DNA from: Scyliorhinus canicula
Taxonomy: Eukaryota
Assembly (NCBI RefSeq): GCF_902713615.1
Contig: NC_052154.1
Coordinates: 81,013,072 to 81,077,071 of the forward strand
Length of the DNA stretch: 64,000 nucleotides
Direction of reading: 5' to 3'
Shown here: in pieces, positions 1 through 58,944 of the stretch
Layout of the letters: each line of letters opens with the position of its first letter
How positions within the stretch are numbered: the first letter of the stretch is position 1
Position numbers and translations under genes: made by a program
The notes under the pieces: generated by a model
What the model was told of the DNA's origin: nothing
The model's database searches: none
What the model saw: the letters and a program-made list of their open reading frames with translations, nothing else

Positions 1-744
1 CAACCCAGGACTCAGAAAAATACAGATCTTTTGTGTCTTTGAAACGCAGGCAGCTAGACCTGATCGCAACCTCCGCTCGTTTGCATTCTAATGGCTCATT
101 TCTCCAGAATAATAACCCTTGTGTATAAATAAACTATCTTTGAACTTGAACTGACTAACTGGCTGTGTGGTCATTTGACCGATAGACGGGAAAGCCTTGT
201 GGTTCAGCTGTGGTCTCGAGAACGACAGATTGGCAGAATTATTAATCCTAATTGCTATTCCTGTGATTTTTGGGAGAATTATTGCTGTGTGGAGGCTGTT
301 TGAAATCAGGATATCACTGCGCACGGAACGGGCAGGACGATATATTTACTCACTTTCGCTGCCTATACTCCTGAATGAAGGCCAGTCCCTCAGATGAGGT
401 GCTGGGGAATTGCCCGCTCCTGGGGCCTGAATCGATATTATCAGCCACAATACGTAACTTTAATCATGTGGTATCCCGTGTCATGGTCACACATTCAATT
501 TCTTAATCTATGAGATCAATTCCTGACCAAACCATTCAATGCATCATTCTGATTTGCTGCAAGTGGTCAAGAAACGTTTTTAAAATCATAAGGTTCCACC
601 TCCTTATTTAGATTCTGCGTTGCAAATTAGATGCGATATATCTCAAATCCGATCGTTGCTGCTTCTTAATTGTTTCTGTATTTGACTTATCTTCGTTATT
701 TTTTCTCTGACGGATGCAGTTTATCGTAGTTCTTCTTTTTCTCG

Positions 745-929
745 CCGCAAAAGTAACTTCAAACAAAATGGAGCAATTCCCTAAACTTATGACTGTAGCC
801 AGGGGGGACAATGTTTCCATATTCTGCACATTTTGCATATATGAATATGCTCCTGAAGTTTCTTGGTGGCGACGCGGCGCGGAACGTTTCTGGAAGCAGA
901 CAACGGAAAGAGATCCACTCCAAAGAAAG
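745..929 (+). pseudogene. Truncated, frameshifted duplicate of the 5' two-thirds of the V exon of receptor gene 1
   Basis: AAKVTSNKMEQFPKLMTVARGDNVSIFCTF..YAPEVSWWRRGAE parallels 1334-1520. The upstream intron (about 650-744) is also duplicated. The acceptor AG is lost, small deletions shift the frame near 888-905, and homology stops before the second Cys. Confidence 0.9.
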
Positions 930-1067
930 ATGCTCTCTTTCAGTCATGTGACATCTCATGTCAGGGTCCCCCCGTTTCATATACTCAGAGACCTATTTCC
1001 TGCCTAAACCATTCAGAATACATCCTCCTGTGCAGCACCTACAATTATTTTCCTTTCCATTTACAAG

Positions 1068-1122
1068 ATGTCGATCAGAGTTACAGCTCAGTACATGGCT
1101 CTTCTGGGTCTGATGTGGCCAG
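1068..1122 (+). CDS. Receptor gene 1, exon 1: signal peptide MSIRVTAQYMALLGLMWP
   Basis: ATG at 1068, hydrophobic 18 codons + 1 nt, donor CAG/gtatgt. Phase 1 joins the V exon in frame. Confidence 0.8.
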
Positions 1123-1333
1123 GTATGTTGAGTTGTTTAATGTTGCCGTTGTAGAATGGCTTAAATGGTATTTTAAGTATACAACTGTATTGTTGTAAAA
1201 AAAAATAGTTGCTGCGCTTCTTCAATTCCACTGCTGGTGTTTCTTCATTGTTTTTGAATTTTCCTCCATTTAGTTATTTTCCTTCTCTGACGTATGCAGT
1301 TGTTATCCACATTCTTTTCTACTTATTTCCTAG

Positions 1334-1639
1334 CCGCCAAAGTAACTTCGAACAAAGTGGAACAGTTCCCTCAACACCTGACGGTAGCCAGGGGTGACAA
1401 TGTTTCCATGTTCTGCACGTTTTCCATATATGAAGATGCTCCTGAAGTTTCTTGGTGGAAACGCGGCGCTGAATCTTTGCTGGAACCAGACAACAGGAAG
1501 AGATTTAGTCCAAAGAAGGGACGGAGTACATTAGAAATTCTAAATGCGAGTATCACAGACTCCGGAATGTATTACTGCAAAGTCAAACATCAACAGGTCA
1601 AGATTGGGGATGGAAGTGGCTCCCAGCTCACTGTGTTTG
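1334..1639 (+). CDS. Receptor gene 1, exon 2: V-set Ig domain with germline-joined J-like strand (NCR3/SIRP/VJ-C1-like)
   Basis: Acceptor ttcctag, donor G/gtaagt, 306 nt, phase 1-1. Contains B-strand Cys (SMFC), WW, DSGMYYC and G-strand GDGSGSQLTV. Confidence 0.95.
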
Positions 1640-1762
1640 GTAAGTGTAATTGTTCCAGGGAAAGACCGCTTTCCAGCTGTGTGTGATTTATGTAATTTTA
1701 GCTGTTATTACTAGTTGAAAATCCGGCGATAACGGATTCGTTTTACACTGCTGTAGGTTTTC

Positions 1763-2090
1763 ATAGAATCATAGAATTTACAGTGCTGAAGGAGGCCATT
1801 CGGCCCATCGAGTCTGCACTTGGAAAGAGCAACCTACCCAAGCCCACGCCTTTACCCTTTTCCAGTAACTCCACCAAAACCTTTGGACACTGTGGGAAAA
1901 ATTTGCACAGCCAATCCGCCTAACCTGCACATCTTTGGTCTGTGGGAGGAAACCGGAACACTTGGAGGAAACCCACGGATACACGGGAAGAACGTGCAGA
2001 CTCCACACAGACAGTCATCCGAGGCTGGAATTGAACCTGGCATCCTGGAGCTGTGAACCAGAAGTCCTAACCACTGTGCCACCGTGCCGC
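1763..2090 (-). mobile_element. HE1-type tRNA-derived shark SINE
   Basis: Head gcggcacggtggcacagtggttag, body cacagtccaaagatgtgcaggttagg and tail (attctatg)n on the minus strand. The same family recurs across the window. Confidence 0.85.
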
Positions 2091-2911
2091 ACTTTTTTTT
2101 CCATTGGCCTCCATGTTTAACGACCGTTAATCCCCCATCGCCCAAGATCAATTTTATTCATTCCTCGTCCTCTTACATTTGGAAGTGCTTTTCATCCAAC
2201 GAGTGTTTTTGATGCACCCAGAATTGTCACTGAACAAGATATTGAAAGAAAGATGCTGTTAAAATCTTATTTTGAGATTAATTAATCGGATGGTATGGTC
2301 ACTTTTATTGTCAACAAAAGTACCCTAATACTTCACACAGCAGCAAACTTTGTATTCACTGCTTTAAATTGCCATCTATTACTTTTTATGCTTAATTGTC
2401 CAAACGTTGACTTCGGTGAGACTCTTAGGCATGGGTATCAAAATAATTGAGTTAATCAGCCAAATTAAGTAGAGGTCTAATCAATCGGAATACCCGAATA
2501 AGCTAGAGGAACGGAATAACCCACTACAGTTCCTGTGCTCCTATTTAATGCAGTACACGTGTGTCCATTGATTACCTTGTTTACGATACCGAACCCTCCA
2601 ATGAGGCTTCTTACAGTCCATGTTAGAGGTGTTGATCTTGCCTTCAAGTCTGGTTTTCAACAAAAGTCTGAGAGCGTGCAAGATAGTAAAGATGTTAATT
2701 GCCCATGTTGAGGACCTCTGTCGTTGGCCAATTCGACCTTCATACACTCGAAACCAATAATTGCAGACGGGCTGTCACCGAACGTTCCTGTAAATGGCTG
2801 GGTTCGATACTTGTTAATCTTGTTTTCCATTTCCATTCCCCAAACTTCAATGGAAGTTAGAGGAAGGCAGCAGACAGCAGCACCCTCATTCGTTTGCATG
2901 GACAATCTACA

Positions 2912-3110
2912 GCATTACCTATCACACGTGGATTGGCCATGCTAAGTTGCCTCTTAATGTTCGCAGATCTGCGGGTTAGGTGGGTTGGCCATGATCTAAG
3001 CTTACCATCATGCGAATGGGACGGGGTAGTGGGCCTCGCTAGAGTGCTCGTTCGGAGGGTCAGTGCAGAGTCGTTGGACCGAATGGCCTAATGTTCCACT
3101 GGAGAGATTA
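2912..3110 (+). mobile_element. 5'-truncated HE1-type SINE
   Basis: gtggattggccatgctaa...gggtcagtgcagagtcgttggaccgaatggcct matches the 3' half of the family. Confidence 0.7.
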
Positions 3111-3679
3111 TATGCTGGTGATACTTAATGAGATCCAAGGCAAACAAATATCCTTAAATTGATAATTTGGTATTGGAACAGTGCCAAATAAATAGACATA
3201 TAATGAAAATAATGTTAAGGATAGCGTTCTTAATAAATTAACAAACTACTTCAACTTATTAAAGGACATTTGCTTCCAGATATGTTGTGTCAGGTGATCT
3301 AATAATATTAGGTAGATAGGCAACTGATAGAAATATCATCGCTTCAGGCAAGACGAATTCAACACATCAAATGGAGGAGAGCAGAAAACATTTAAAATAT
3401 ACATTCGGAGTGAGATATGCAATTATGTTTACTTCATCTGAATGGGTGCAGTTATCGACAAAGCCATGACAATTGCCAATATTACACTTTCATGACGAAA
3501 CTAGTATTCCAACCCTCAATTCTTCCTCTGGAGAAAGCACCTGAGGTGAAAACTGCACGATGTGGAAACTCCAGAACAGACACTGAGATGTTGTCCTCAA
3601 AATTAGTGCGGAATTATAATATGCACATTTTAAATCAAGGCTGGAGTCTATATGACATTATTATAATATAATAAACTTC

Positions 3680-3945
3680 ATCGTCACAAGTAGGCTTACA
3701 TTAACACTGCAATGAAGTTACTGTGAAAAACCCCTTGTCGCCACATTCCGGTGCCTGTTCGGGTACACAGGGAGAATTCAGAATGTTCAATTCACCTAAC
3801 AGCACAGCTTTCGGGACCTGTGAGAGGAAACCCACGCAGACACGGGGAGAACGTGCAGACTCCGCACAGACAGTGACCCAAGCTGGGAATTGAAGCTCGG
3901 ACCCTGGCGCTGTGAAGCAACTGTGTTCATCACTTCGGTGACACA
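3680..3945 (-). mobile_element. Shark SINE (tail ttcacagtaacttcattgcagtgttaatgtaagcctacttgtgac family)
   Basis: Same head and tail as the copies near 38435-38735 and 41495-41800. Confidence 0.8.
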
Positions 3946-4447
3946 CGGGTGTTCACAGTCAAAACAAAATATGGTTGGTATTACTTGAAATATTCGAAAA
4001 TCGAATTGATTTGAAATAGGCACAGAAAATTGTATACGATATTATGAACAATGTTAATTACGGGAAAGACGAAAGAGGACACCATTGCTCATTCTGATTG
4101 TGTTGCACTGTTATTTGCAAACATTTAGAGCTGAATTGTCTTCTGAGACATTGCTTCGAACCGCAAACCTGCTCCAGGACCTGCTGTTCCCATTCAGAGC
4201 AGTGACCCGTCTCTCCCTGCATGTTATCAATACTTGGAGATTCATCCTCCCTGTATATCGTTTGTAATACATCCGAATACTTTGCCGTGCGCAGTTTAAC
4301 AATTTTGATATAAATATAAACTCAAGAGTTTAGAAGTCATAAAATGGATAACTGTTGTCACTGCAGAAGTGTAACATGAAAGTTGCGGCATACAAATGTC
4401 AATGCGTTCCTTTAAATTAAAAACAGCATTCTATTTTCCTGTTCAAG

Positions 4448-4744
4448 TTCCTCCAACGCCATTGAAAATGCTTCCGGTTGAAGAGAATTCAGCGACTTCT
4501 CTGAAGTTCGAATGCAAAACTGCTGCCTTTTACCCGAAATATTTCAGAATCTCCTGGCAAAGAGATGGTGTGGAAATTCTGGCCGGAATAGAAACTGTGA
4601 AAAACGAGACAGCGGAGGGTCTTTTTGAGGTTTCCAGCTCTTTGGAAGATGCAAGGCCTGTCCTGAATGGAGTAGTTTATACCTGTCTGGTATCCCATAT
4701 CTCCCTTAAGGTGCCCGCCAGTGTCAGCTACACCGTCATTCAAG
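4448..4744 (+). CDS. Receptor gene 1, exon 3: C1-set Ig domain
   Basis: Acceptor ttcctgttcaag, donor G/gtaaga, 297 nt, phase 1-1. Contains FECKTAAFYP, ISWQRDG, FEVSSSL and YTCLVSH, which are C1-set hallmarks. Confidence 0.95.
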
Positions 4745-6060
4745 GTAAGATTGGAAACAGTTACAGGATTAAGCGCCGGAAAGGCTGCAACCTTAGTTAC
4801 TTGTTAGACATGCATCTGATCAGCTATTAAAACTCGAATATACAGGGTAAATGTGGAGCGTATTTACTCACAATGTCACATCAATGGGAATTAATTAAAA
4901 TAATCAAGGTAGTTTGTCGCTGAAAGAGGGAGAATTTCTCCCTGAAAAGATCTGAAACTGGAGGTTGATGTGCGAACGGCACAAAAACTTAAAGCTGTTT
5001 CTTAGTCAAATTCTTGCCAAATGAAATTAACTTAAAATGGATCAGTATTAGTGGAGACACTTTTATTTAGGACAGTTCCTGTGTGGAACTTCAGCTAATA
5101 TTTTTGAAGGGAATTTTCTCTATGATGCATATTCCTTGTGCATTCATAACTTATTTCTAGCTTATGCAAACATAAACATTTCAGAATACCCTCTTTTACC
5201 TGGATTTACTTTATTCGCATATGACCTTCCCTCTTTTAGTCGTTTGCAAATTGCGGAGTTGAGGAATTGGTTCTAAATCTATTTTGGTGGCAATTGTGGT
5301 TGCAGACCTCTTACTCCAATAAACAAAGTTAATTGAAGTTATCAGCACTAAGGGTGTTGAATAACGGAGGAAATTACAGTGTTAGTACCGAGAATTTGGC
5401 ACTTGATCCGTATGTTACTGAGAACGTGTGTGGCTAGATGGGGGCCGATCAAAGCTACCAGATCTGAAAATCAGGAATCCTAAAGCATATGTGGCATCCT
5501 GATGAAGTTATTAGTGCGGGCAAAAAAACAGGCTGATTGTCAGAGATAGCTGAGCTGGTGTTGCGTGGCGGACTTGTCGTGTCCCATGTTGTTTTAAAAA
5601 AGGGCCCAAAAAGGCGCTTCTTTTTTTTGTACCCGGTCAAATATATTTCAAAGGCTATTTGTTTAGGAGTTGTTTTTCTCTATTTCTCATAAAATTAACA
5701 GAGAGAACAGAGCAGAATCCTACCCCAAAATGGACATCATTGTCCTATATTAATTATACAACCGTTATGTGGAGTTAAAAAAAGAAGCTAACGATCGACA
5801 AGATGGCTTAGCCACCAAAACAGGCTGCCTCGGAAGGTGGAATGCGCCACGGTACACGCTCACGTGGTGCTCATTTTGCCGAGTATATTTTGAGGTTATC
5901 ATCGTCCGGTAATTCAACTTTAGAAATGTAGAATCGGTCCCAAATTTAGAGTAACAATTTTGTGGATCCCTTTCCGTGTCTAAAAGCTAATACTATTTGT
6001 TTCCATTCGGCAATACTTATATGAGCTAATTGATGTGTATCTTTTAATCCCGTATTGTAG

Positions 6061-6167
6061 ATCACAGTTTCCGCAACGTGGTGATTACACGGCTTGTTCT
6101 GGGTTTTTTGGTCATTCTTGGATTGCTGGGTATAATTGTGGACCATGTAACATATGTTCGACTGAAG
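6061..6167 (+). CDS. Receptor gene 1, exon 4: transmembrane exon with Arg (DHSFRNVVITRLVLGFLVILGLLGIIVDHVTYVRLK)
   Basis: Acceptor gtattgtag at 6060, donor AAG/gtgaga. In frame with C1, with a hydrophobic helix carrying an N-terminal Arg. Confidence 0.9.
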
Positions 6168-6571
6168 GTGAGAGGACGTAATTTTTTATTCAATAAACCA
6201 CATTCAAAGTCCATACACAGGTAGCATTGGTAGGCTAGAAATGCGAAATGTGATTCTGCCCGACGTTGTTGACGTAATTTAAGATTAATGGTCCTAAACC
6301 TTGCTGTCAAATAACAGACAACATAAAAGATCGACACTTTTAACACACTTTTCCTGTTTAGTGCTGCTGAAAAGTTACAGGCATGAAACGTTAACCGTTC
6401 CCTTTCCACACATGTAGCCTGAGCAGCCAAGTATTTTCAGCATGTTCAGTTTTTATTTCGAATTTTATTAATTTCCACATTTATTTCAGTTTCGTGCAGA
6501 ATAAGTGAAGTAATAAACATCGAACGTGAATGTTAAGCATTGGCTCCGTGTTCGCTCCTTTCATTAAACAG

Positions 6572-6595
6572 GTTCTGGTTTCAAATTGTCGCTGA
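6572..6595 (+). CDS. Receptor gene 1, candidate terminal exon (VLVSNCR-stop)
   Basis: Pyrimidine-rich acceptor ctcctttcattaaacag, phase 0 matching the TM donor. Unspliced read-through to a TAG shortly after the TM exon is an alternative. Confidence 0.5.
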   Translation, partial: VLVSNCR

Positions 6596-7555: not shown

Positions 7556-7960
7556 TGGCACGGGTACTTGTGGCTTCACAGCGCCGGGGTCCCAGGTTCG
7601 ATTCCCCGCTGGGTCACTGTCTGCACGTTCTCCCCGTGTCTGCGTAGGTTTCCTCCCGGTCCTCCGGTTTTCTTCCACAGCCCAAAGACGTGCAGGTTAA
7701 GTGGATTGGACATGCTAAAAAAATGCCCTTAGTGATCAACAAAAAAGGTTGGGAGGGGTTATTGGGTTACGGGGATAGGGTGGAAGTGAGGGCTTAAGTG
7801 TGTCGGTGCAGACTTATGTTCTATTTTTTATGTTCTATCTGTGCAGGTTGGGTGCTGTTACGCGGTAGGGTGGGGGAGTGAGCATAGGTAAGATTCTCTT
7901 TCCGAGGGTGGATGCAGACTCGATGGGCCGGATGGCCTCCTTTTGCATTGGAGGTATTCT
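7556..7960 (+). mobile_element. HE1-type SINE
   Basis: gcttcacagcgccggggtcccaggttcgattcccc head, gtggattggacatgctaaa body and ttctatgttctat tail. Confidence 0.8.
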
Positions 7961-9397
7961 ATGGAATAAATAAAAATCAACCAGGTCCGACTTAGGTAAT
8001 CAGGAGTTAACATTCTTTATATATTTCTTTAACGTCTTTATGAAAAATTATGGACCACACAATAACATACAGACAATAATCAGAGATTCGCCGAAAGCCA
8101 TTGAAAACACAAATGCAAGTTTTGGAATCTGATGTTTTGTAACTTTGAAAATGGTGTCATATTTATCTAAATTAAGTTTTCACCGATCCTGGTTCTATTT
8201 ATTACAGGGCTATTGGAATAATTATTGTCGAATTACAATGAAATGGCACAATTGGAGGCAGTCCCGGTAATTTAGTAATAGTTTCATATTGTTCCAAATG
8301 AGTGTGCATCTGTGAGTCTGGAAATATTGATGTCTTGCTTAATGTATTTGGGATATTGATGATGAAGGGATTACATCGGAACTGTGTGTGTATATAAAGA
8401 AGGAGGAATATAACTAAAATAAACCGTTTCGTTCAGAAACTCTCTTCCATTCCCTTTTCCGAAAGCTAGCGATTTGAAACAAACCTGTTGAACTTTAACC
8501 TGGTGTTGTAAGACTTCTTACTATTATTTTTTAATAGTCAGGTAAAGATCGGCTGATAATCTCCGCCTCGGTTGTTCATAGCTACGCAAGCTCAACACGT
8601 TAGCCTTTGGGAAAGAGACACATGTGATCAGATAGAGGCGGGAAACAAAACAGAAGAGCCACAGGAAGCAAGGACCAAGATGAAAGAGCTGCAATTGAGA
8701 CGGATCAATGGTTCATGCAGCATTCGCTTACAGCCACTTTACGTAGCATTTCGTGACCCAATTTTCCAGTAACATTAGAATATAAAAATACAATTGTTAG
8801 TTGACGCCGTGCACAAATAGAGCTAAATGCATTCTATATAATTGCATTAACACGAATTTAGACATGGCCGTCAGCCAATCCACATACGGATTTTTAGGAG
8901 GGCTGGCACATATCCTGATGTATGAATCTCATCAATTGACATTTAAAGAAAATAAATGTAATTGTTCACATTTATAAGCATCACAATACTTTACGTAAGG
9001 AAACCTTTCATATATATTTTTGCCGAAACCATTGGAAATGACAGAGAGAGACATTCTTGTTCAACGAATTTATATTTGAAGAGTATTTCAGGACCTTTAA
9101 CACTATTCCGTGCTGGTTGCAATTCTGTCTCTGTCAACAGTCAGTCTGTGAAAGCTGCAGCCGTTCAAGAAGGCAGCAAAAAACCACCATGAGGGATGGA
9201 CAACAAACGCTGGCCCAGCCAGAAACGCTCCCATTCCAAGAACGAACAAAAACAATGTGAAGGAATGTTGTCTTCTCCATTTTCTCCTTTCCGGGATACC
9301 TAAAACCAAGTCTCTATCTCCCTCTTTTGGGTGATCAGCAGATTGCAAAATATCTCATAATTATTTCAAATAAATGAAAAATGAAATTAAAATCGCT

Positions 9398-15096: not shown

Positions 15097-18000
15097 CGGT
15101 GTCCACCCATCCACGGGAGAAAGAGTTTTCCTTCTGCACCCCAGTACACAACGTATACACCAGGATTGACTTCTTTGTGGTGGGGAAATCGGTGCTTCCA
15201 GGGCTGGTCAAAGCGGAATACTCAGCAATCGTAATCTCCGACCACTCTCTACATTACATAGCTGTGAGGTTAGAGATGGGCAAGGCACAACGCCTCACCT
15301 GGAGGTTGTACACTGCCCTAATAGCCGACACGTCTTTCAGCGAAAAGGTATCGCAGGCCCTAGTGGAGTATACGGAAAGCAACCAAAATGGGGAGGTCTC
15401 ACCCTCCACATTCTGGGAGGCGCTAAAGGCCTTAATTAGAGGGGAAATTGTCGTCTTCAAAGAGCGAAGAGTCAGGGCGGAAAGGACGGCTAGGCAGCAG
15501 TTGGTCGACTCCATACTGGAAGCAGTCCGTAAATACTCTGAGGCACCAACCGTAGAGCTCCTGGCAGAGTGGAAAAAGCCACAAATGGACTTTGACCTGC
15601 TCTCCACGAGTAAAGCTGTGCATCAACTCCACCAGGTATGGGGGACCCAATGCAAATACGGAGACAGAGCCAGAGGCCGGCTGGCACACCAGCTGAGAAC
15701 ACAGGCTGCCACCAGAGAGATTGCGCAAATTTGGGGCAACAGAGGCACATTGGAAACAGACCCAGAAAAGTTCAACAAAATCTTTCAGGTCTTTTACCAA
15801 GGGTTGTACACCTCGGAGCCCTCAACAGGGTCTCGGGGATTAAATGGTTCCTCGACGGACTGGACATGCAAGTTGTGGGGGAAGACAGAAAACGGGGCCT
15901 GGAAGCACCACTAGAACTGGGAGAGAGAATGGAGAGTATTAGCTCCAAGCAGGCGGGGCAGATGCTGGGAGCAAATGGGTTCCCGGCGGACATCGACAAA
16001 ATATTTGCGACAGCCCTGGCCCCACATCTGCGGGAGATGTTCACAGACTTTCTGGCAAGCGGCACACTTCCACCTACACTTGCACAGGCCTCAATATCGC
16101 TAATACCTAAGAAAGACAAAGACCCAACAGAATGCGGGTCATACAGACCCGTCTCATTACTAAACATAGACGCCAAAATACTGGCCAAGATTCTCACCAA
16201 AAGGCTGGAGAGCTGTTCCCAGATATGATTGCAGAGGGCCAGGCGGGCTTTGTAAAAGGTAGACAACTAACATCGAACATCAGGTGCCTGCTTGTGGAGA
16301 GAACACCAGAGATGATTATCTCCCTGGAGGCAGAAATGCTCTTTAACAGAATCGAGTGAAAGTACCTCATACAGGTACTGGGGCGGTTCACGCTCGGGTC
16401 AGGATTCACCTACTGGGTGAAGCTCCTGTACAGCGCTTCCATGGCGAGAGTATGGACAAAAAACACCCAGCACAGGGGCAGCAGGCAGGGATGCCGGATG
16501 TTCCCACTGCTGTTCGCCCGAGCGATCAAACCACTAGAGATCACTCTCTGAACAGCAAAAAACTGGATGGGAATCCCAAGAGGGGCAGGAGTACAGAGTC
16601 TCGCTCTGAGCAGATGTCCTACCTGCTCCTCTACATCTCAGACCATAAAGCAACATGGGAGGAATCAGTACACTCCTGGAATTGTTTGGTGCCTTCTTGG
16701 GCTACAAACTCAATATGAGCAAATGCGGGATGTTCCTGGTGAACCTGCAATGGGGTGGGACAGCGCTGGAGGGACTCCGTTTAAACAAGCCCGACGCAAA
16801 TTCCGCTACCTGGGGATCCAATTCACTCACGATTGGGTGGCGGTTCACGTAGAACCTGACCAGTCTGTCAGAGGAAGTCAAAAAGGACCTGCAAAGATGA
16901 AGCACACTCCCACTCTTCCTTGTGAGGAGAGTGCAGATGATCAAAATGAACACCCTGCCAGGTACCTCTTCCAACTTGGATCTGTCCTGAACTATATCCT
17001 CAAGGCCTTTTACAACTCACTGGACAAGACAATCTTGATGTTTGTAGGGGGGAATGGAAGAATGCTAGGATCCCAATGAAGGTCCTATAGAAAGGAAAGT
17101 CCAGGGGAGGGCTAGACTCCCAATGCCACTCGGTAGCGACTGCAGAATGAGTAATGGGATGGATTAGGGAGCCAGAAGCCGGGTGAGTGTGCACAGAGGA
17201 TGCCTCCTGCATGGGGACATCGCTCCTGGTCTTCGCCATGGTGGCACTCCCATTCCCACCCAAAAAACACTCCAGCAGCCCAGTGGTGGTAGCCAGCTTC
17301 CAGGCCTGGAACCAATTACGGAAGCAATTCGGCCTGACCACAATATCCGACAAAGCCCCCCATCTGCGACAACCATAGGTTTGTGCCAGTGTTCACTGAT
17401 GCCACCATTAAAAGGCAGAGACAGGACGGAGTACACTGACAGCCAGGGATCTACACACCGACGACAGGTTCACAACACTGGATGAACTGATGGAGAGATT
17501 TCAACTAGCTAAGGGCAACAAACACAGATACCTGCTGCTTAGCAACTTCCTACGGAAGGAGACAAGGATGTACCCATGACCACCGTGACAGACACTACTA
17601 GAGGAAATACTGGACGCAAGCATTCTAGGTAGAGGAAACTGTAATGGCATGTATGAACGACTGGTAGAGAGGGCTGACACTGTACTGGATGCGACGAGGA
17701 TGAAATTGGAGGAAGACCTGGGGCTAGAAATAGGGTGAGGACTCTGGCATGAGGCACTACATAGGGTTAACTCCAGCTCCACATGCGCAAGACTCAATCT
17801 AACGCAAATAAAGGTGGTACATAGAGCCCACTTAACAAGAACCCGAATGAGTAGGTTCTTCCCGGCGGTGCAGGACACATGTGAATGGTGCCAAGGAGGC
17901 CCGGCGAACCACGCCCACATGTTCTGGTCTTGCCCCAGACTTGCTGGGTACTGGACAGCCTTCTTCGTGGCAATGTCTAAGATGGTGGAGATGAGGGTGG

Positions 18001-28115: not shown

Positions 28116-28644
28116 CTGGGTTACAATTGGGAACCATATAACTTGCCATGACTGGAATCTGAAGAGTCACATGAGAAACCAGGCAGATATACACAGTTCC
28201 TCCCCGGGCCGGCTGTGCATCTTCAAAATAGCTCCAAGCTTACATAGAACATAGAACAGTACAGCACAGAACAGGCCCTTAGGCCCTCAATGTTGTGCCG
28301 AGCCATTATCACCCTACTCAAACCCACGTATCCACCCTATACCCATAACCCAACAACCCCCCCCCCCCCCCTAACCTTACTTTTATTAGGACACTACGGG
28401 CAATTTAGCATGGCCAATCCACCTAACCCGCACATCTTTGGACTGTGGGAGGAAACTTCATACATTCCGGCTCTGCTGAGTTGCTTCGTGATGTTTATTC
28501 CAGTCACAATGCTTTCATTATTTTTGTACCAAGTGATAGTCAGACCAGCCGGGTGAAATGAAGCCATTTCACACACGAGAGTCAAAGAACCAGCGACATT
28601 ACGTTCAGATACGTGAGGAACAATCTTCACTGGAGTTGGGAGAG
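28116..28644 (-). pseudogene. Receptor gene 2: C1 exon interrupted by a SINE
   Basis: Removing 28242-28452 plus one TSD gives a 312-nt in-frame exon, ALPTPVKIV..LTLVCEMASFHP..ITWYK..GMYEVWSYFEDAQP..YICLVSHVTLQIP, collinear with gene 1 C1. Confidence 0.92.
28242..28452 (-). mobile_element. 5'-truncated HE1-type SINE inside the C1 exon
   Basis: ttctatgttctatgt tail and a 6-bp TSD AAGTTT/AAGCTT (28453-28458 and 28236-28241). Confidence 0.9.
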
Positions 28645-29578
28645 CTGGTGGAAGGTCGAGAAGAAAGTTAATATGTCGCCCATTCTGGAACAGAGTAACA
28701 TTCAATTCTATGGTGGCTCCTTCCCAGTGAAGGGTTATGATTATTTTGGATCTGCTACAACATACAAAAAACACCATCCACCTGTTTGTTAATGGTTAAA
28801 TAAACAACAATACGAATCAACCACTCTATATGTTATACTATACTGCACAGCTGAATGCAGCTCGGCCTAACGTGTCTGTGACACGTATGCCCGAATTCTA
28901 AGGGATCAGACACTAGTTTATGGTTTGTATTTTCTGTTCTTCAATCAATAGCTTTGGTCAGATCCTGAGTGACTAACGCAAGAACTTGAATCGCTTGAAA
29001 TTCTTTCAAACCGATAATGTCATCAATAAAGAACTGAAATGTACTGAAATTGTCTGGGTTGTCCAAACTCTAATCACTGGCGTTCTTAATTTTCAAATAT
29101 AACTGTCTCCCAGATGCTAAAGTAACCTGTGAAATGTAACTTTCGCCTGTTGCTAAATCCCCAAAGACCTACGGAATTCATTCCACGCCCCCGATCCTCG
29201 CCCGAGCTCTGCAAATGTTTCCCGATCAGGAACGATCAAATTCGGTTTGAAGTTGCCTTTGAAGTTGTTTTCCATCCAAAATAGTGCGGTGCAGATCTTA
29301 AGAATGATCAGGTGTGATTATTACTTTCCCTGTTTGATATCCGAGCATCCTGTTTAGGTGGATGAATTGGCGAACATGATGAAACATTTGGGTGCCTATG
29401 TCGTGAAGGAAAAATGCATTTGCGAAAACATTTTATATGTCCCTCATTCGCGATCTGACACCGTTTGCAAAACGCAAATGTTAAAGGAACACCCAAGGGA
29501 GTGGGAAAAGTATATTCTTTATTACTTATTTGAATAACCTCTTTACTATACAACTTACTCTCTTTATACAGTTCTTAC

Positions 29579-29821
29579 CACTGACGATGAGCGTTGATCC
29601 ACTTCCATTTGCGGCCCTGTTTCCCTGTGTCACTCCGCAGTGTCACTGAACACTGATATTCAGGAGTTTGAAGGAGGCTCTTCCGTTCCCAGTGACAAAT
29701 CGTTTCCTGCTCTCTGATGCAGGGTGTATCACTTGCTTTTCGCCAAGCTTCCACCAATAATCGTCCGCATCTGAATCGTCTTGGAAACTAAGAAATGTGC
29801 AGTCGAATGCAATATTCGTAC
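29579..29821 (-). pseudogene. Receptor gene 2: 3' part of the VJ exon, with an in-frame stop
   Basis: TNIAFDCTF..YWWKLG..RKRF..FKLLNISVQ*HCGVTQGNRAANGSGSTLIVS, donor G/gtaag. The DxGxY motif is replaced by TGA (about 4 codons lost). Confidence 0.92.
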
Positions 29822-30519
29822 TGTAGAAGTGGATTTCATTTGGAACTTCGCTGATAGGGTTAATATAACAGTTCTGAAAAGCTCTGTGAAAGAGATGTCA
29901 ACAGGTCAAGGGATGAAATAAAGGGAGTGTGTCTGACCGGCATCTGTAAAAGCAAAGATGTCAGAAGGTTATGGGATGGAATATAGGGAGTGTGGCATTG
30001 GTACTAATTAATGTTCTGACCCGTATCTGTAAAAGCAGAGAGGTCAAAAAGGCAAAGAATGGAATGAATGGGAACCGTTACTTTATTGCAGAGATAACAT
30101 AATTAAGCTCGTTTGACCAGTTGAAACAAATAAACATTGAAATGTAAAAGGAAGGGCCTTGGAATGAGATAAGCCAGATGGCCATGGGATACAAAAACCT
30201 TTGTATTAATATTGATAGTGACTTGTGCTAATGATTATGTCAAAAATAACCTCCCGACCTCAAAGAATAATTCCATATATGTACATATTCTGGATCCTTG
30301 CCAAATCATAGGTGTATCTAGGAATTTAAAGGGACCTCCCCTAAGCTGCAAGATGTATAAAGATACCGTCCTTATTCTGGGATTTTGGCACTTCTCGAAG
30401 GTGGTTACCCGACTGCTTAGAGATTTGTCCCGGCCGTAAATAAACGAAAATTCGTTACTGACGTGTTCGAGTGTTTTACTTCTGGACTGACGATCAGATA
30501 CGTGAAAGCGCAATTCACA
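29822..30519 (+). repeat. ERV-A 5' LTR
   Basis: TGTAGA...TCACA, TATAAA at 30356, AATAAA at 30439. Four substitutions versus the 3' LTR counted by eye. Confidence 0.97.
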
Positions 30520-33338: not shown

Positions 33339-34748
33339 TGGAAAAACAGAGGATTTCTAACCTCCGCTAGTACACCCATCTCACACCAGCAGTTAGTAAC
33401 CCAGTTATTGCAGGCCCTTATGCTCCCAGACAAGATAGCGGTGATAAAATGCGCAGCGCATACAAAAGGCACAGGACTGGTGGAAACGGGCAACAGGAGA
33501 GCGGTCGAGAAGGCAAAAGAAATTTCTAAATCTGGCAAACTAACGGTGCCTAGAATGATGAGGCAGACTAAAACCCCCTCGGGAAAGTCCCCCTCTGAAA
33601 AACCTATGCCAACCATTGCTGACATAATCCAAATGCAGGAGGACGCTCCTGCAACTGCTGTAAATATGTGGAAAAACTTAGGATGTATATATGATATCGA
33701 AAATAAGCTGTGGGTCACCCCGGTAGGACAAACATGTATGACCGATGCATTAGCAGCCTGGGTGACCGAATGTGTACACTTTGCAACTCACTGTGGAGCT
33801 CGTGCCACAGGGGACATATTGTTAAAAAGCTGGTGGCACCCACGACTGCAAGAAATGGCCCAACAAATTAGCAGTCGGTGCCTAATCTGTCAACAGCACA
33901 ACCCCGGTAAGGCCGTCCCCTGTGATCCTGGCACAACCCCCTTACCTGAGGGTCCATTTGAGACCCTACAAATGGATTACATTGAGTTGGAAAGATGTCA
34001 ATGCTATAAATATGTGTTAGTCATTGTGGACACTTTTAGCAAATGGATCGAGGCCTACCCGACTACGGATAACAAGGCCTCGACAGTAGTTAAGGTGTTA
34101 ATGCGAGAAATTGTTCCGCGATTTGGAATTCCAGCCCGGCTGAGCTCTGCCAATGGTCCCCACTTCATAGGTCAAATCAATAAGGAATTCTGTGCTCTGC
34201 TAGGAATAAAGCAACAGTTTCATTGTGCCTACAGACCACAAGCCGCTGGAGTGGTGGAAAGGGCTAATCAGACTCTAAAGACTAAACTCGCTAAACTACA
34301 AGCAGACACTGGGGCCACTTGGCTCAAACTCCTGCCTTTAGCACTCTTCCAGCTACGTGCCACCCCCGCAGGAAAAACTCGCCTAAGCCCAGCGGAAATA
34401 CTATATGGCAGACCCTTTCGAACGCCTTGGGACAGCAGTGTTCCACGGAATGTTCAATTCCATTACATGACTACCGAGATGGCTAATTATATATTAACAC
34501 TAACTAGAATTTTGAAAGGATTACACTCCCGAGTTCGTGCCACCCAGGAAGAAGTCCCCTCCATTACTCATGACGTCTCCATCAACCCTGGGGATTATGT
34601 CCTAATTCAAAATTGGACATGTAAAGGTTTGGAACCTCGATGGGAGGGTCCCCTACAGGTTCTACTCACTACCCCCACTGCAGTCAAAGTGGAGGGCCGG
34701 AACGCATGGGTACATATGCACCATTGTAAGTTAATTAAGTATCCATGA
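33339..34748 (+). pseudogene. pol: ERV-A pol remnant: RNase H C-terminus and integrase (open frame)
   Basis: KCAAH..GN, HHCC (HFATH..CLIC), QMDY, SSANG (second catalytic Asp changed to Ala), VVERAN, WEGP. Confidence 0.93.
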
Positions 34749-38434: not shown

Positions 38435-38735
38435 ATAATCTTTATTATTGTCACAAGTAGGTTTACATTAACACTGCAATGAAGGTACTGTGAATATCCC
38501 TAGTCGCCACACTATGGCGCCTGTTCGGGTACACTGAGGGAGAATTCAGAAAGTCAAATTCACCGAACAAGTACGTCTTTCGGGACTTTTGGGAGGAAAC
38601 AGGAGCACCCGGAGGAAACCAATGTAGGCACGACGAGAACGTGCAGACTCCGCACGGACAGAACCCCAAGCGGGAACCAAGCCCAGGACGCTGGCACTGT
38701 GAAGCAACAGTGCTAAGCATTGTGCTACCATGCAT
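38435..38735 (-). mobile_element. Shark SINE
   Basis: Same family as 3680-3945. Confidence 0.8.
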
Positions 38736-40874: not shown

Positions 40875-41190
40875 TAGAACAGTACCTTCGGCCCTCGATG
40901 TTGTGCCGAGCACTGATCACCCCACTCAAACTCACGTATCCACCCTATACCCGTAACCCAACAATTCCCCCTTAACCTTACTTTTTAGGACACTACGGGC
41001 AATTTAGCATGGCCAATCCACCTAACCCGCACATCTTTGGACTGTGGGAGGAAACCGGTGCTCCCGGAGGTAACCCACACACACACGGGGAGGACGTGCA
41101 GACTCCGCACAGACAGTGACCCAGCCGGGAACCGAACCTGGGACCCTGGAGCTGTGAAGCATTGATGCTAACCACTATGCTACCATGCTG
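40875..41190 (-). mobile_element. Near full-length HE1-type SINE
   Basis: Head ggggcagcatggtagcatagtggttagc and the family body and 3' end. Confidence 0.85.
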
Positions 41191-41494
41191 CCCCATTGTT
41201 TGCAAATTGTAGAACTGAAGTACTGGATAATATGGAACCCAGCCTCTTTGTTCTCAAACTTAGAACTATGTTGAGAAAGGTACATTCGCCCGAACGTCAG
41301 AATCGTAAGGTAGAAAACTCTCTGAAAGTGATTCGTGAGAAATCACGAGTTTGTGATGGGTTAAGACATAGATCTAGACAGAATGTATTATAAAACTTTT
41401 GTGTCTTACAAGACGACACTCCGTTCTCATTGACATGTGTACCATTCTCAGAAAGCATGTATTGTTTTACTGGGCATGCGCCGTATCGTTACAG

Positions 41495-47539: not shown

Positions 47540-50500
47540 TCACGGATCCCACACCCTTGTGTGGATCAGGCATGATATCTTTGAATTGTGTGACCGGGGG
47601 TCACTGTCATCGTTGCGGACAAGTCGGTACGAATTGTCCCTGTGCCAGAGTGTTGGGTCCAAAAGTGAATGGGTATTGTCGGGGTCGTCGGGGTCGGGTG
47701 GTGGGTCTGGGTTTTTAATGTAAGTGACTTCCATGGGGTCACTGTAGTCGGGGTCATAGTCGCTGCTATGTGGGCTGTAGTGTGGTGTGCCGTGGCTGTC
47801 CTCAGAGTCAGTGTCTGTATCGCTGTCTCTGCTGCGGCAGCTTGTGGGCGTTTCGGGGCGTGGTCTGTCATGGTCAGTGGGCGGAGTCGTGGGCGAGTCC
47901 GATGAAGAACTGGTCTGTGAGGGGGATGGTGGAAACGTGTCTCTAGTGGGTGGGGTGAGGTGTTCTGCTGCGTCTAGCAGGACATGGTGTGCATGGTTGG
48001 CCTGCATTCCATATGCCTTTAACTGGTTGATATGGAACCACGCGGTCTTACCATTAGGATATTTTATCCTATAAACCGAGGGGCTAATTTTATCCGAAAT
48101 TGAGTATGGTCCGGAATATTTTGGTGCCAAAACACTGCTGGGGTTGTATACAGATAGCATTACCTGTTGCCCAACCTGGAATTCTGTGGGGTGTACGGTC
48201 TTGTTAAAACAAGCTGTGCGTTGTTTACGGCGTTTCCCTAGCTGAACTGCGGCTGCAATCTGTGCAGACCTCACAGTCTCAACCAAGTCTTTAACCGTCT
48301 TTTCGTGTGTGAGGGCCGTCACTTCGGGGCTAGTCATGTCCAGTCCTAAAAGGAATTCTGTACCTTTCATAGGGCGTCCGGTCATGAGTGTGTGTGGTGT
48401 GTATCCTGTGGAAGTGGAAACTGTATTTCTGATGAACATTAATGCAAATGGGAGCACTGAATCCCATGTGGAGTTGTTCTCTTGAACCATTTTCCTAAGC
48501 GTGGATTTTAGGGTCCGATTCATGCGCTCTACAATCCCGCTGGACTGTGGGTGATACGCAATATGAAAATTTTGTTTTATTCCAAATATTGTCAGGACAT
48601 TCTTCATGACCCGTCCTGTAAAGTGAGATCCCTGGTCCGAATCAATGCTACGGGGTAAACCCCTTCTCGTGAAGATGTGGTGGGTCAGGATCTTTGCAGC
48701 TGTCTTAGCTGTATTCGTTCTAGAGGGGAATGCCTCTACCCATTTGGTAAAGGTATCGATGACCACCAGAACGTATTTATAGCCATTCCTACAAGGGGGC
48801 AATGGGCCTATAAAGTCGATCTGGAGGTTTGTCCAGGGGCCATTAACTGGTCGAGTATGCCGAAGTTGTGCCTTTTTAGAATACCTTTCCGGGTTATTCT
48901 GGGCGCAAATAAGGCAATTCTCGATGTAGTGACCTACATCTGTCCTTAGGTTAGGCCACCAACAGAGCTGCCTGAGGTGCCTCGTGGTTGCGTCGGTCCC
49001 TTGGTGCCCGTGTCCATCATGGAACAAAGCAATCATTTCATTCCTGTCCTGCTGCGGGACCACATAAAGCTGATCCTTTATGATCACACCCTCATGTGTG
49101 GTCAGTGCGTGTCTGAATTTATCATACTGTGGCACGAAGTTGCCTTTGAAAATCTCCCTGAGATCCTCATCTTGCTTTTGTGCCTCTACTAAATCTTTAA
49201 TACTGGTCTGTGAGACTTGGACTGCGCTCACAGGGGCGCTAGCTGGTGCACTAGCTGGGGGTGTCCATAAGTGTCCTCGCCTGGAACCTGCCTTAGCCAG
49301 TGCGTCGGCTTTTACATTCCCTGGGGGGGATGACCTATGGTGGCTTCTTACTTTGATAATGCCGAAGGTCCTGTCCTTCGCTTTCTCTAAAATGTGTTGG
49401 AGTAAAGGGGCTGATGGAAGGGGTTTCCCATCTGCGGAGACAAAACCTCGTGTCCTCCACAGGGGCAGAAAATCGGTTAAACTATTGCAGACATATAAAC
49501 TGTCCGAATATATGTCCGCTGGGCTGGGGAAAGAATCGGGGTGGTCCACTATATAAGCTATGGCCGCGAGCTCTGCTGCCTGCGCGCCTAAGTGTCCCGG
49601 TAATTTTAAAGCTATCTCCTCGAGAGCGCGCCCCTGCGCGTCCTCTACATAGATGCCGCATCCTGTGATACGCTCACCTTCTAAAACTGTGGATGAACCG
49701 TCTACGTAAATCCTCAGTGGTCCACACGTGTCTGTGGGTTGGGGACTTTGTCTGGGGGTCCCTATCTTCCTGGGGGGTGTCTTTGCTATAAAGGGTCCTG
49801 TGTTATGTAAGGGGGCTACAATTTCACATTCATGGGGCTGTCCTGGGTATTGGAGGTTGTCGGCTAAAAATGTGTGTGTGCGGGTCCGTTTACCTGTAAT
49901 GTCCCGTCCTTGTAAAAGTAGTGTCCACCTAGCTGCCCTAATCTGGCTAACTGAACCGTCCTTCAGTCGACCGTCTAGGAGTAACTGTGTGGGGGTGTGC
50001 TCGGTCAAAATGGTGGTGGGGTTGAGTCCGGTAATGTACGAAAAATATTGCACTGCCCAGAAGACAGCAAGGAGGTGCCTCTCGCAGGCTGAAAATCCTT
50101 GTTCAACTGGGTCTAACAGTCGGGAGGCATAAGCCACTGGTCTTAGCTGCTCGTGCCCTTCCTGAAGTAACACGGCCGAGAGGGTCAGATCTGTGCTTGC
50201 TACCTCTATTGCATATGGGGAGAGTGGGTCTGGGACTTGTAGCGCGGGTGCTGCGCTAAGGGCTTTCTTTAACTCTTCCACAGCCTCTGTATGCTGCGGA
50301 AGCCATTCCCAGGGGGCTCCTTTCTTAAGGAGGTCTGAGAGTGGGGCGGCTTTTGTCGCGAATCCGTCGATGTGGTTCCGACAATAACCAACCAGTCCTA
50401 AGAACGACCGGAGGGCTGAAACATTCTGGGGAAGGGGCAATTTGACAATCGAATCAATTCTTTTGAATTCGATCTCGCGTTTGCCGTGTGTGATGACTGT

Positions 50501-58380: not shown

Positions 58381-58700
58381 AACATAGAATATAGAACATA
58401 CTGTGTAGAAGGAGGCCATTTGGCACGTCGAGTCTGAACCGATCCACTTAAGCCCTCACTTCCATCCTATCTCTGTAACCCAATAACCCCTCCTAACATT
58501 TTTTTGATCACTAAGGGATATTTATCATGGCCAATCCACCTAACCTGCACGTATTTGGACTGTGGGAGGAAGCCGGAGCACCCAGAGGAAACCCATGCAG
58601 ACACGGGGAGAATGTACAGATTCCGCACAGACAGTGACCTAGCAGGGAATCGAACCTGTGACCTTGTGAAGCCACAGTGCTATCCACTTGTGCTGCCATG
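58380..58700 (-). mobile_element. HE1-type SINE
   Basis: Family body and ttctatattctatg tail. Confidence 0.8.
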
Positions 58701-58944
58701 CTGCTCGAAACCTTGGGTATGAGTGACGATTGTATGGTAGAATTCGTTATCAAGGTGAAAAGTGAGGTTGTTGATTCTGAGACTAGGGTCCCGAACCTCA
58801 ATAAATACATAGAAACATTGATAACAGGTGCAGGAGAAGGCGATTCAGCTTGGAGCCTTCACCACCATTCAATATGATCATGGTTGATCATGCAAATTCA
58901 GTATTCCACTCCCGCTTGCTTTTCATACCCCTTGATAGCATTGT

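Follow-up and report, generated by a model that had tools for sequence, protein, structure and literature searches.

A catshark V(J)-C1 receptor gene as a probable activating partner in a chondrichthyan paired receptor family

The SIRPs of mammals and birds resemble the catshark gene described here in having a V domain whose J-like GxGxxLxV strand is not preceded by an aromatic residue, followed by C1-set sequence, and in forming a multigene cluster with paired ITIM-tailed and charged-TM, short-tailed members of similar ectodomain (SIRP-alpha inhibitory, SIRP-beta activating). SIRP-beta carries a central TM lysine and couples to DAP12, which fits the rule for TM charges given below. LILRA and GPVI are Arg-in-TM receptors coupled to FcRgamma/CD3zeta, and several Arg-in-TM receptors also have an acidic side chain some 17 positions further down the helix from the Arg. 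According to a 2026 review, CD89 couples to FcRgamma through an Arg close to the top of its TMD, NKp30 and NKp46 use zeta/gamma, and a central TM Lys accompanies coupling to DAP12 or CD3 (PMC13107469). CD89, NKp46 and NKp30 share with the catshark gene an Arg in the TM top and a short, ITAM-free tail (PMC13107469), but CD89- and NKp46-type ectodomains are of the C2/I type (leukocyte receptor complex) and NKp30 has a single V, whereas the catshark gene encodes V-C1. The NITR, KIR, LILR, CHIR and LITR families are likewise birth-and-death clusters in which ITIM members outnumber basic-TM activating ones, and the V-type domain of teleost NITRs also has a J-like motif. To our knowledge, none of these five families contains a C1-set domain. 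B7H6 (NCR3LG1) shares the V-C1-TM architecture but differs in being a ligand with an uncharged TM, a long tail and no paired activating and inhibitory forms. The elasmobranch UrIg and UrIg2 are shark-specific and similarly combine a split leader, a one-exon non-rearranging VJ and C1-type sequence (J Immunol 2023; Sci Adv 2025, PMC12227049). Shark UrIg2 has nine to eleven C domains and dimerises through disulfide links; it is located in the antigen-receptor complex and UrIg is linked to the MHC, and neither has been presented as a paired family of many genes (PMC12227049). UrIg and UrIg2 thus carry multiple C domains, whereas the catshark gene has a single C1 exon, a charged TM and ITIM-bearing twins.

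At the Scyliorhinus canicula locus, the leader, VJ, C1 and TM exons have GT-AG borders and splice in frame, with exons 1-3 ending in phase 1 and exon 4 in phase 0 (Table 1). These four exons are exactly those drawn in an earlier sequence-only reading of the 64-kb window, the whole stretch of DNA analysed here. The exon 1 leader is 95-100% identical to the leaders of family proteins P0001 and P0002. The fifth exon of that reading does splice in frame to give the computed 262 residues, but its ending was found in no family protein compared and the assignment is replaced here by an exon conserved in relatives. This exon encodes SGKDRLIISASVVHSYASSTR, which matches the C-terminal end of XP_038661933.1 (P0001, residues 256-276) at 90% identity (E 3.6e-6), the exon's acceptor has a pyrimidine tract and an AG at 8536-8537, and akin tails are present in Heptranchias and Heterodontus proteins (P0006, P0007 and P0016). 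Its use likely yields a product of 276 residues and would carry the gene about 2 kb beyond the end first drawn. The 276-residue product matches S. canicula XP_038661933.1 in length and is 97% identical to it, differing by nine amino-acid substitutions, none disabling, and by no frameshift or stop; variants specific to this copy include Q32, H33, D40, K108, V131, K151 and A166. All eight splice sites are canonical and the reading frame is open, and on this sequence evidence the gene is real, intact and non-rearranging, of V(J)-C1-TM layout. The exact product was absent as an annotated protein among the matches of the word-indexed protein search; this copy may therefore be silent or lack an annotation.

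Table 1. Coordinates of the receptor gene and related features in the 64-kb window
Feature	Position	Strand	Remarks
Truncated V pseudo-exon, adjoining the gene upstream; tandem-duplication remnant	669..940	+	65-75% identity to family V domains
Exon 1: ATG and most of the signal peptide (split leader)	1068..1122	+	ATG at 1068, GT donor at 1123, phase-1 end
Exon 2: leader end and V/I-type domain, YYC, J-like GSGSQLTV	1334..1639	+	AG/GT, phase 1-1
Exon 3: C1-set constant domain (CKTAAFYP ... YTCLVSH)	4448..4744	+	Pfam C1-set, AG/GT borders
Exon 4: stalk, TM helix and juxtamembrane VTYVRLK	6061..6167	+	AG/GT borders, phase-0 end
Alternative last exon of the sequence-only reading, VLVSNCR and stop	6572..6595	+	AG acceptor, in-frame splice possible; no homology support
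Exon 5: 21-aa cytoplasmic end SGKDRLIISASVVHSYASSTR and stop codon	8538..8603	+	Homology-supported
AATAAA polyadenylation signal	8951..8956	+	~350 nt 3' of the stop
Divergently oriented V-C1 pseudogene, same family	28132..29897	-	In-frame stop in V exon; C1 exon split

The V codons and the J-like strand are contiguous (DSGMYYC ... GSGSQLTV) within exon 2, as in a pre-joined VJ-type exon and as had been proposed, and are not split into V and J segments with recombination signal sequences at their borders. In a search for such signals the sole heptamer-like element, CACTGTG at 1629, sits within the LTV codons and lacks a spacer. Positions G112, G114, L117 and V119 of the J-like strand are at least 90% conserved across the aligned family members, and the position before GxG is Asp, the aromatic residue of Ig/TCR J segments being missing. 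In Pfam searches the first domain scores higher as I-set (53.8 bits) than as V-set (39.6 bits). Its AF2 model, computed for the V alone (pLDDT 91), lacks a C'' strand and has a C' strand reduced to a one-residue bridge, where an Ig/TCR-type V-set domain has nine strands including both; only 40 residues separate the conserved Trp from the second Cys, and WWKR stands where WYQQ is expected. WYQQ and the aromatic residue before GxG are the Ig/TCR V-V interface positions. Taken from sequence and model, the "V" is thus a domain of V/I type, short and devoid of a C'' strand. In a fold search with this domain shark VNAR came first, and VNAR and TCR V-alpha were the best matches; VNAR presumably also lacks the C'' strand.

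The assignment of the second domain as C1 holds: it scores 38.1 bits against Pfam C1-set (PF07654; cut-off 21), and the hallmarks CKTAAFYP, ISW and YTCLVSH are all present, the C, FYP, W and YxCxVxH columns being invariant or nearly so in the 20-24 family members aligned. A family C1 profile finds its best matches in Ig constant (CH) domains and UrIg2 (E 1e-20 to 1e-28), and the UrIg2 structure 9dmx is the top C1-containing PDB sequence match.

With the fifth exon of the earlier reading the TM reads ITRLVLGFLVILGLLGIIVDH, as stated there. R228 is residue 5 of a 21-residue hydrophobic stretch, VVITRLVLGFLVILGLLGIIV, near its outer end, and an Asp-His pair lies at the inner end; the AF2 model of P0001 has two beta-sandwiches and a TM helix overall, with the helix spanning 222-272. 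The stalk is cysteine-free and the cytoplasmic tail of 28 residues contains no conserved signalling motif and no ITAM. Absence of the ITAM agrees with the earlier claim, but the claim that there is no ITIM needs qualifying in that the juxtamembrane VTYVRL, two residues from the membrane, formally fits the loose ITIM pattern; its Tyr is missing from the matching TM cassette in other shark genera. No family-type ITIM exon or uncharged-TM exon was found within the window. The earlier reading had noted a TM Arg and a short tail, and by the rule in PMC13107469 an upper-TM Arg with a motif-free tail is the arrangement of the FcRgamma/CD3zeta-coupled class (CD89, NKp30, NKp46). The position of this one residue predicts coupling to an FcRgamma/CD3zeta-type adaptor. 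The TM Asp, previously called unusual, recurs in an R-x16-[D/E]-H cassette common to P0001, P0004, P0007, P0016, P0083, P0106 and P0133, a minority of the family drawn from five shark orders; across these aligned proteins its conservation is a defining feature of the cassette. Among the sampled proteins the cassette occurs in sharks and in no ray or chimaera, and a TM search for homology to the Arg-in-TM activating receptors found nothing.

More than 80 distinct family sequences were found, and all that carry a source name are chondrichthyan (sharks, rays and chimaeras). Three word-indexed, word-filtered searches gave 24, 51 and 41 family matches, an exhaustive hmmsearch gave about 45 single-stretch V-C1 representatives among the best 150 of 12,160 matches, and 20 of the 20 members looked up are chondrichthyan. 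One family search shows a step in score, from 143 bits within the family to 35 bits beyond it, and no bony-vertebrate protein scored with the family in the word-filtered searches; on these samples and searches the family appears so far to be restricted to Chondrichthyes. The majority combine an uncharged TM with an ITIM-bearing tail. The automatic names of the members conflict (B7H6-like, SIRP-like, tapasin-related, Ig-lambda-like, TCR-beta-like), and a literature search for the V-C1 family found no paper, in keeping with the suggestion that it is uncharacterised in sharks. As judged from the sequences collected, the family is unnamed, large and multigene, and the catshark gene has many paralogues within this chondrichthyan-wide, mostly ITIM-bearing group and is not a singular relic. 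One isoform of a chimaera member, in which C1 is skipped, bears the automatic name 'NCR3-like'.

The inhibitory-type S. canicula protein XP_038662960.1 (P0211) is 95% identical to the gene in V and 89% in C1 but 22% in TM; its TM is uncharged and its tail carries LTYAAL (an ITIM) and TVYAGV (ITSM-like). The two form a same-species pair with near-identical ectodomains and opposite signalling modules, as in paired families, and both should therefore bind the same or very similar ligands. P0004 has identities to the gene of 50% in V, 89% in C1 and 86% in TM. On the ectodomain tree the activating cassette requires at least five changes, and its closest relatives include ITIM forms. The gene is thus probably the activating-type partner of a near-identical inhibitory receptor.

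Other accounts of the locus can be weighed against these results. Were the gene a SIRP-beta-like activating member of a shark SIRP co-orthologue, the family being 'shark SIRPs', this would account for the NCBI names of many members ('tyrosine-protein phosphatase non-receptor type substrate 1-like', 'SIRP beta-1-like'), for SIRP-alpha among the sequence and fold matches (2wng; fold ranks 13 and 29) and for a shared design in which a V with a J-like strand is joined to C1 sequence and ITIM-tailed forms are paired with charged-TM ones. We consider this unlikely: where SIRPs are V-C1-C1, there is one C1 exon here from V to TM and two-C1 forms occur in some gene models only, the Arg is at the TM top and not a central Lys as in SIRP-beta, and identity to SIRP-alpha, at 22-25%, does not exceed that to butyrophilins, B7H6, CD276 or TAPBPR; moreover, the automatic names contradict one another and no bony-vertebrate protein scored with the family. 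Still less probable is a B7H6 homologue, that is, a ligand for NKp30-type receptors and not a receptor. The basic TM residue and near-identical ITIM-tailed twins are a receptor signature, unlike B7-type ligands, the tail is short where that of B7H6 is long, and the match to B7H6 has 21-22% identity and E-values that do not surpass those of butyrophilins, CD80, CD276, SIRP or TAPBPR. In its favour, B7H6 is itself a V-C1 protein at fold-search ranks 4 and 14 (TM-score 0.57-0.63), NCBI calls the closest paralogues 'NCR3 ligand 1-like', and the name of the chimaera isoform is a further point for it. Against it, NKp30 was only 28th in the V-domain search.

The gene might instead be a recent silent duplicate becoming a pseudogene, the functional activating gene being XP_038661933.1. 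It sits among pseudo-exons, a dead paralogue and retroelements, and its own protein is unmarked among annotated-protein matches; yet the open frame, the eight canonical splice sites, the polyA signal and the lack of any frameshift or stop among the nine differences from XP_038661933.1 make this improbable as well. The sequence-only reading had seen a TCR-chain-like family relevant to the precursor of rearranging receptors; the full form of that idea, a non-rearranging survivor of the antigen-receptor precursor that serves as a TCR-like dimer chain with CD3-type modules, is the most remote of these accounts. The VJ in one exon, C1, basic TM residue and split leader are compatible with it, as are the best scores of the C1 profile, on Ig constant domains and UrIg2, the Fab light chains and TCR chains that lead the whole-model fold search, and the closeness of the V domain alone to shark VNAR and TCR V-alpha. 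However, the antigen-receptor matches are 17-29% identical, and their E-values do not improve on those for CD79b, CD8-beta, NCAM or B7 proteins, and neither fold nor profile comparisons give a specific affinity to TCR, NKp30, SIRP or B7H6. The first domain is of V/I type without the Ig/TCR V-V interface residues and the TCR-chain-like precursor reading is therefore unsupported; the missing C'' strand and stalk cysteine, and a large, fast-evolving and mainly inhibitory family, also speak against it.

We consider it likely that the gene encodes a type I membrane glycoprotein, the adaptor-coupled activating member of a cartilaginous-fish-specific paired family that lies in a birth-and-death cluster. 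The protein would comprise a split leader, a short domain of V/I type carrying a J-like G strand, a C1-set domain, a cysteine-free stalk, an Arg-containing TM and the 28-residue tail. The inhibitory form would recruit SH2 phosphatases, and the TM Arg of the activating form would pair with the aspartate pair of a dimeric FcRgamma/CD3zeta-type ITAM adaptor, a pairing on which surface expression and signalling presumably depend. Counted down from the Arg, the conserved Asp-His is 17 residues away, about five turns of the helix, hence on roughly the same helix face, and may touch basic juxtamembrane residues of the adaptor. A more doubtful extension is that the V-C1 family is the shark counterpart of NK/myeloid paired receptors, filling the role of KIR, LILR and NITR, with an R-x16-[D/E]-H cassette homologous to the FcRgamma-coupling TM exon of bony vertebrates; if true, adaptor-coupled VJ-C1 activating receptors would predate the split between cartilaginous and bony vertebrates.

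The cluster itself would evolve by birth and death, swapping ectodomain and TM/tail cassettes. In the V pseudo-exon upstream of the gene the acceptor AG has become CG, 1 bp is deleted and the 3' third is missing. The C1 exon of the pseudogene is interrupted by a 214-bp dispersed repeat (28234-28447), which matches other repeat copies, among them 40876-41046 at 88%. The content of the 64-kb window consists solely of receptor family members and retroelements.

The receptor gene of the window is intact and has the domain types read from the sequence at the outset; the sequence-only reading was largely right, with its last exon and, as a footnote, its statement on ITIMs to be amended. As a last exon it had proposed 6572-6595 (VLVSNCR and a stop), which has an AG acceptor, is in frame and could be spliced, yet no relative ends in this way. 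Because the conserved exon 5 takes the place of this unsupported one on homology, the best model predicted from the sequence has five exons and a product of 276 aa, as long as the S. canicula paralogue XP_038661933.1 (P0001). The two products are 97% identical, with nine substitutions and neither a stop nor a frameshift; the closest proteins to the window are those of S. canicula, in keeping with its being catshark DNA. The borders of exons 1-4 are canonical (AG/GT) and their phases compatible, and the AG acceptor of exon 5 is preceded by a good pyrimidine tract. Tails akin to exon 5 are found in proteins of Heptranchias and Heterodontus (GKGRLAISASAAHN..., GKERLVISASAAQN...). The leader intron is 211 bp long and the final leader residues are encoded on the V exon, a split-leader layout that has been remarked on for antigen-receptor genes in the UrIg2 paper (PMC12227049).

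Features of the receptor gene and of its surroundings in the window
Feature	Position	Strand	Remarks
Receptor gene, exon 1	1068-1122	+	55 nt; leader, ends in phase 1
Receptor gene, exon 2	1334-1639	+	306 nt; variable-type domain
Receptor gene, exon 3	4448-4744	+	297 nt; constant domain
Receptor gene, exon 4	6061-6167	+	107 nt; stalk, TM, juxtamembrane; ends in phase 0
Receptor gene, exon 5	8538-8603	+	SGKDRLIISASVVHSYASSTR, then stop; 90% identity with the P0001 C-terminus
Polyadenylation signal AATAAA	8951	+	3' of exon 5
Truncated V pseudo-exon	669-940	+	about 130 bp upstream of the receptor gene ATG
V-C1 family pseudogene, divergently oriented	28132-29897	-	about 40% identical
Gypsy-type LTR retroelement	47540-53445	-	uninterrupted 1276-aa pol ORF (RT, RNase H, integrase)
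Gypsy-type element, zinc-knuckle gag-like ORF	51698-52303	-	
Gypsy-type element, 378-aa ORF	52309-53445	-	no Pfam match
446-aa ORF	33408-34748	+	retroviral integrase core and MLV-type integrase C-terminal domain
Reverse-transcriptase ORFs of further retroelements	60093-61460, 15638-16228	+	
SINE-like dispersed repeat copies	1745-2100, 3824-3919, 7566-7963, 38531-38733, 40876-41191, 58383-58704		

In most members of the V-C1 family the TM (…GCAGGILAILLLII…) is uncharged and the tail carries ITIMs of the LTYA[AT]L type. A minority has a TM exon of the consensus R-[LFS]-[VFI]-L-x-[FVI]-L-V-x6-I-I-x-[D/E]-H. This activating cassette is present in Scyliorhinus (the window gene, P0001 and XP_038662025.1, P0004), Heptranchias (P0007, P0016 and P0136, the last with Gln in place of Arg), Heterodontus (P0083), Chiloscyllium (P0106) and Carcharodon (P0133). 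The Asp at the TM C-terminus, which had been called unusual, therefore belongs to an R-x16-[D/E]-H arrangement that is conserved in the cassette of several shark genera.

S. canicula itself has a near-identical inhibitory twin of the window gene. XP_038662960.1 (P0211), an inhibitory form with the ITIM LTYAAL and an ITSM-like TVYAGV, matches the window gene at 95% in V and 89% in C1 but at 22% in stalk and TM. P0004, with the same activating cassette, matches it at 50% in V, 89% in C1 and 86% in stalk and TM. For XP_038661931.1 (P0002), which has an inhibitory-type TM and a truncated tail, the values are 93%, 90% and 25%. On the ectodomain tree the window gene, P0001 and P0002 group together (SH-aLRT 98) and P0004 joins next (96); the distribution of the cassette requires at least five changes on this tree, and ITIM forms are among the nearest relatives. 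As judged from these sequences, the pattern is one of paired receptors in a family that evolves through duplication and the exchange of cassettes. The TM of P0002 has Arg for Cys (IIGRVGG versus IIGCAGG) and its tail ends before the ITIMs; P0002 may have reached an activating form independently, by another route, or its gene model may be truncated.

In the window protein, Arg228 is the fifth residue of the hydrophobic TM stretch. An Arg at that position couples CD89 to FcRgamma; for NKp30 and NKp46 the partners are zeta/gamma, and a Lys in the centre of the TM goes with DAP12 or CD3 modules (2026 review, PMC13107469). Since the position of Arg228 matches the CD89 rule, Arg-dependent assembly with a dimer of the FcRgamma/CD3zeta type would be expected. 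The Asp-His is 17 residues below Arg228, so it would be roughly on the same face of the helix, and it may contact basic juxtamembrane residues of the adaptor. Mammalian FcRgamma-coupled receptors such as NKp46, CD89, GPVI and LILRA presumably also have an acidic residue about 17 positions below the TM Arg. A PDB search with the TM exon of the window gene gave no match. The gene had been described as having no ITIM, and the juxtamembrane VTYVRL does fit a loose ITIM pattern; this motif adjoins the membrane, and its Tyr is not kept in other genera. Reading the window gene as an activating receptor is reasonable from its sequence.

In Pfam the first domain is better matched by I-set (53.8 bits) than by V-set (39.6 bits), and the second is a C1-set domain (38.1 bits, cut-off 21) whose hallmarks, C-x4-FYP, W and YxCxVxH, are invariant or nearly so throughout the family alignment. 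DSGMYYC and the J-like strand GSGSQLTV are encoded on one and the same exon. In a confidently predicted model of the V domain alone (pLDDT 91) the C'' strand is absent and the C' strand nearly so, and its best structural matches are mixed, comprising shark VNAR, TCR V-alpha, CD79b, CD8-beta, NCAM and kappa V at 17-29% identity. A C1 profile placed Ig constant domains and UrIg2 at the top of the solved structures. In the PDB profile searches run for each domain, multi-domain proteins prevail by their summed scores, and these searches demonstrate only that the C1 is Ig-constant-like.

The sequence-only reading took the gene to be relevant to the precursor of antigen receptors, and a special relevance of this kind is not supported. 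We find a short V/I-type domain that shows no particular affinity for Ig or TCR, in one of many fast-evolving paralogues; as the family shows, VJ-C1 architecture alone is not evidence of nearness to that precursor. At the V-V interface of Ig and TCR stand the Gln of WYQQ and an aromatic residue before GxG. The window V domain has WWKR and an Asp at these positions and the stalk is without cysteine; a TCR-like dimer is therefore not supported. UrIg and UrIg2, published non-rearranging shark genes, have several C domains where the window gene has one C1, and their biology differs. Nor does fold point to a clear orthologue. The predicted full-length model of P0001 consists of two beta-sandwiches and a TM helix, and none of its Foldseek matches in the PDB and the Swiss-Prot models stands out: Fab light chains, TCR chains, butyrophilins, B7H6, CD80, CD276, SIRP-alpha, TAPBPR and SKINTs are roughly equal (E around 1e-13 to 1e-14, 15-25% identity), so that the comparison is not discriminating. 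A V domain like that of NKp30, an idea taken from the name 'NCR3-like' of a chimaera isoform, is not supported; the protein so named comes from a family gene, as an isoform that skips C1, and NKp30 is only at rank 28 in the V-domain fold search.

The named proteins from three word-indexed searches are exclusively chondrichthyan, and in one of these searches the weakest family member scored 143 bits and the next protein 35 bits. Among the top 150 matches of an exhaustive profile search of 1.84 billion representatives were about 45 further V-C1 proteins in a single stretch, 170-490 aa long, and all 20 that were looked up came from sharks, rays, skates or chimaera. P0211, P0001, P0004 and P0100 are all encoded on one catshark chromosome of 198.8 Mb. 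Automatic names within the family conflict (NCR3LG1-like, that is B7H6-like; SIRP-alpha- or SIRP-beta-like; tapasin-related; Ig-lambda-like; TCR-beta-like; MHC-II-beta-like; CD276 homolog; PD-L1-like), as is expected where no true orthologue carries a name. Our literature search returned the UrIg and UrIg2 papers, nothing of use on shark adaptor genes and no paper on the V-C1 family, which appears to be uncharacterised. Annotated isoforms of P0006, P0210 and P0206 (Heterodontus, Scyliorhinus and Callorhinchus) skip the TM exon or the C1 exon; those skipping the TM exon are possibly secreted, and skipping of C1 leaves a V-TM-ITIM form, called 'NCR3-like' by NCBI. In this family functional variety may be increased by exon skipping.

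Paired activating and inhibitory receptors encoded in the germline have been documented at length for mammals, birds and bony fish; to our knowledge, those of cartilaginous fish are little characterised apart from NKp30 and the skate MDIR genes. The V-C1 family, present across sharks, rays and chimaeras, would be a concrete candidate for innate recognition (NK or myeloid) in the oldest jawed vertebrates. It is of moderate interest. To comparative immunology it offers clear inhibitory/activating pairs, along with a TM cassette of adaptor type that is conserved, and both the model of the window gene and the contradictory automatic names need correction in annotation.

Two family remnants accompany the gene in the window. 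The pseudo-exon, which matches intron 1 in its 3' part and the V exon over its first two-thirds, has its acceptor AG changed to CG and a 1-bp deletion. The pseudogene has an in-frame stop in its V exon (29645-29643) and has lost the DSGxY segment. A dispersed repeat of 214 bp (28234-28447) splits its C1 exon, and neither a TM nor a tail exon belonging to it was found. A search of the 64 kb for a family ITIM or uncharged-TM exon, by regular expression and tblastn, returned noise only (best E 0.4). The remainder of the window is made up of retroelements, among which the gypsy-type element may be a young copy and the 446-aa ORF looks like a fragment of an endogenous retrovirus. Two of the SINE-like repeat copies sit inside intron 2 of the receptor gene.
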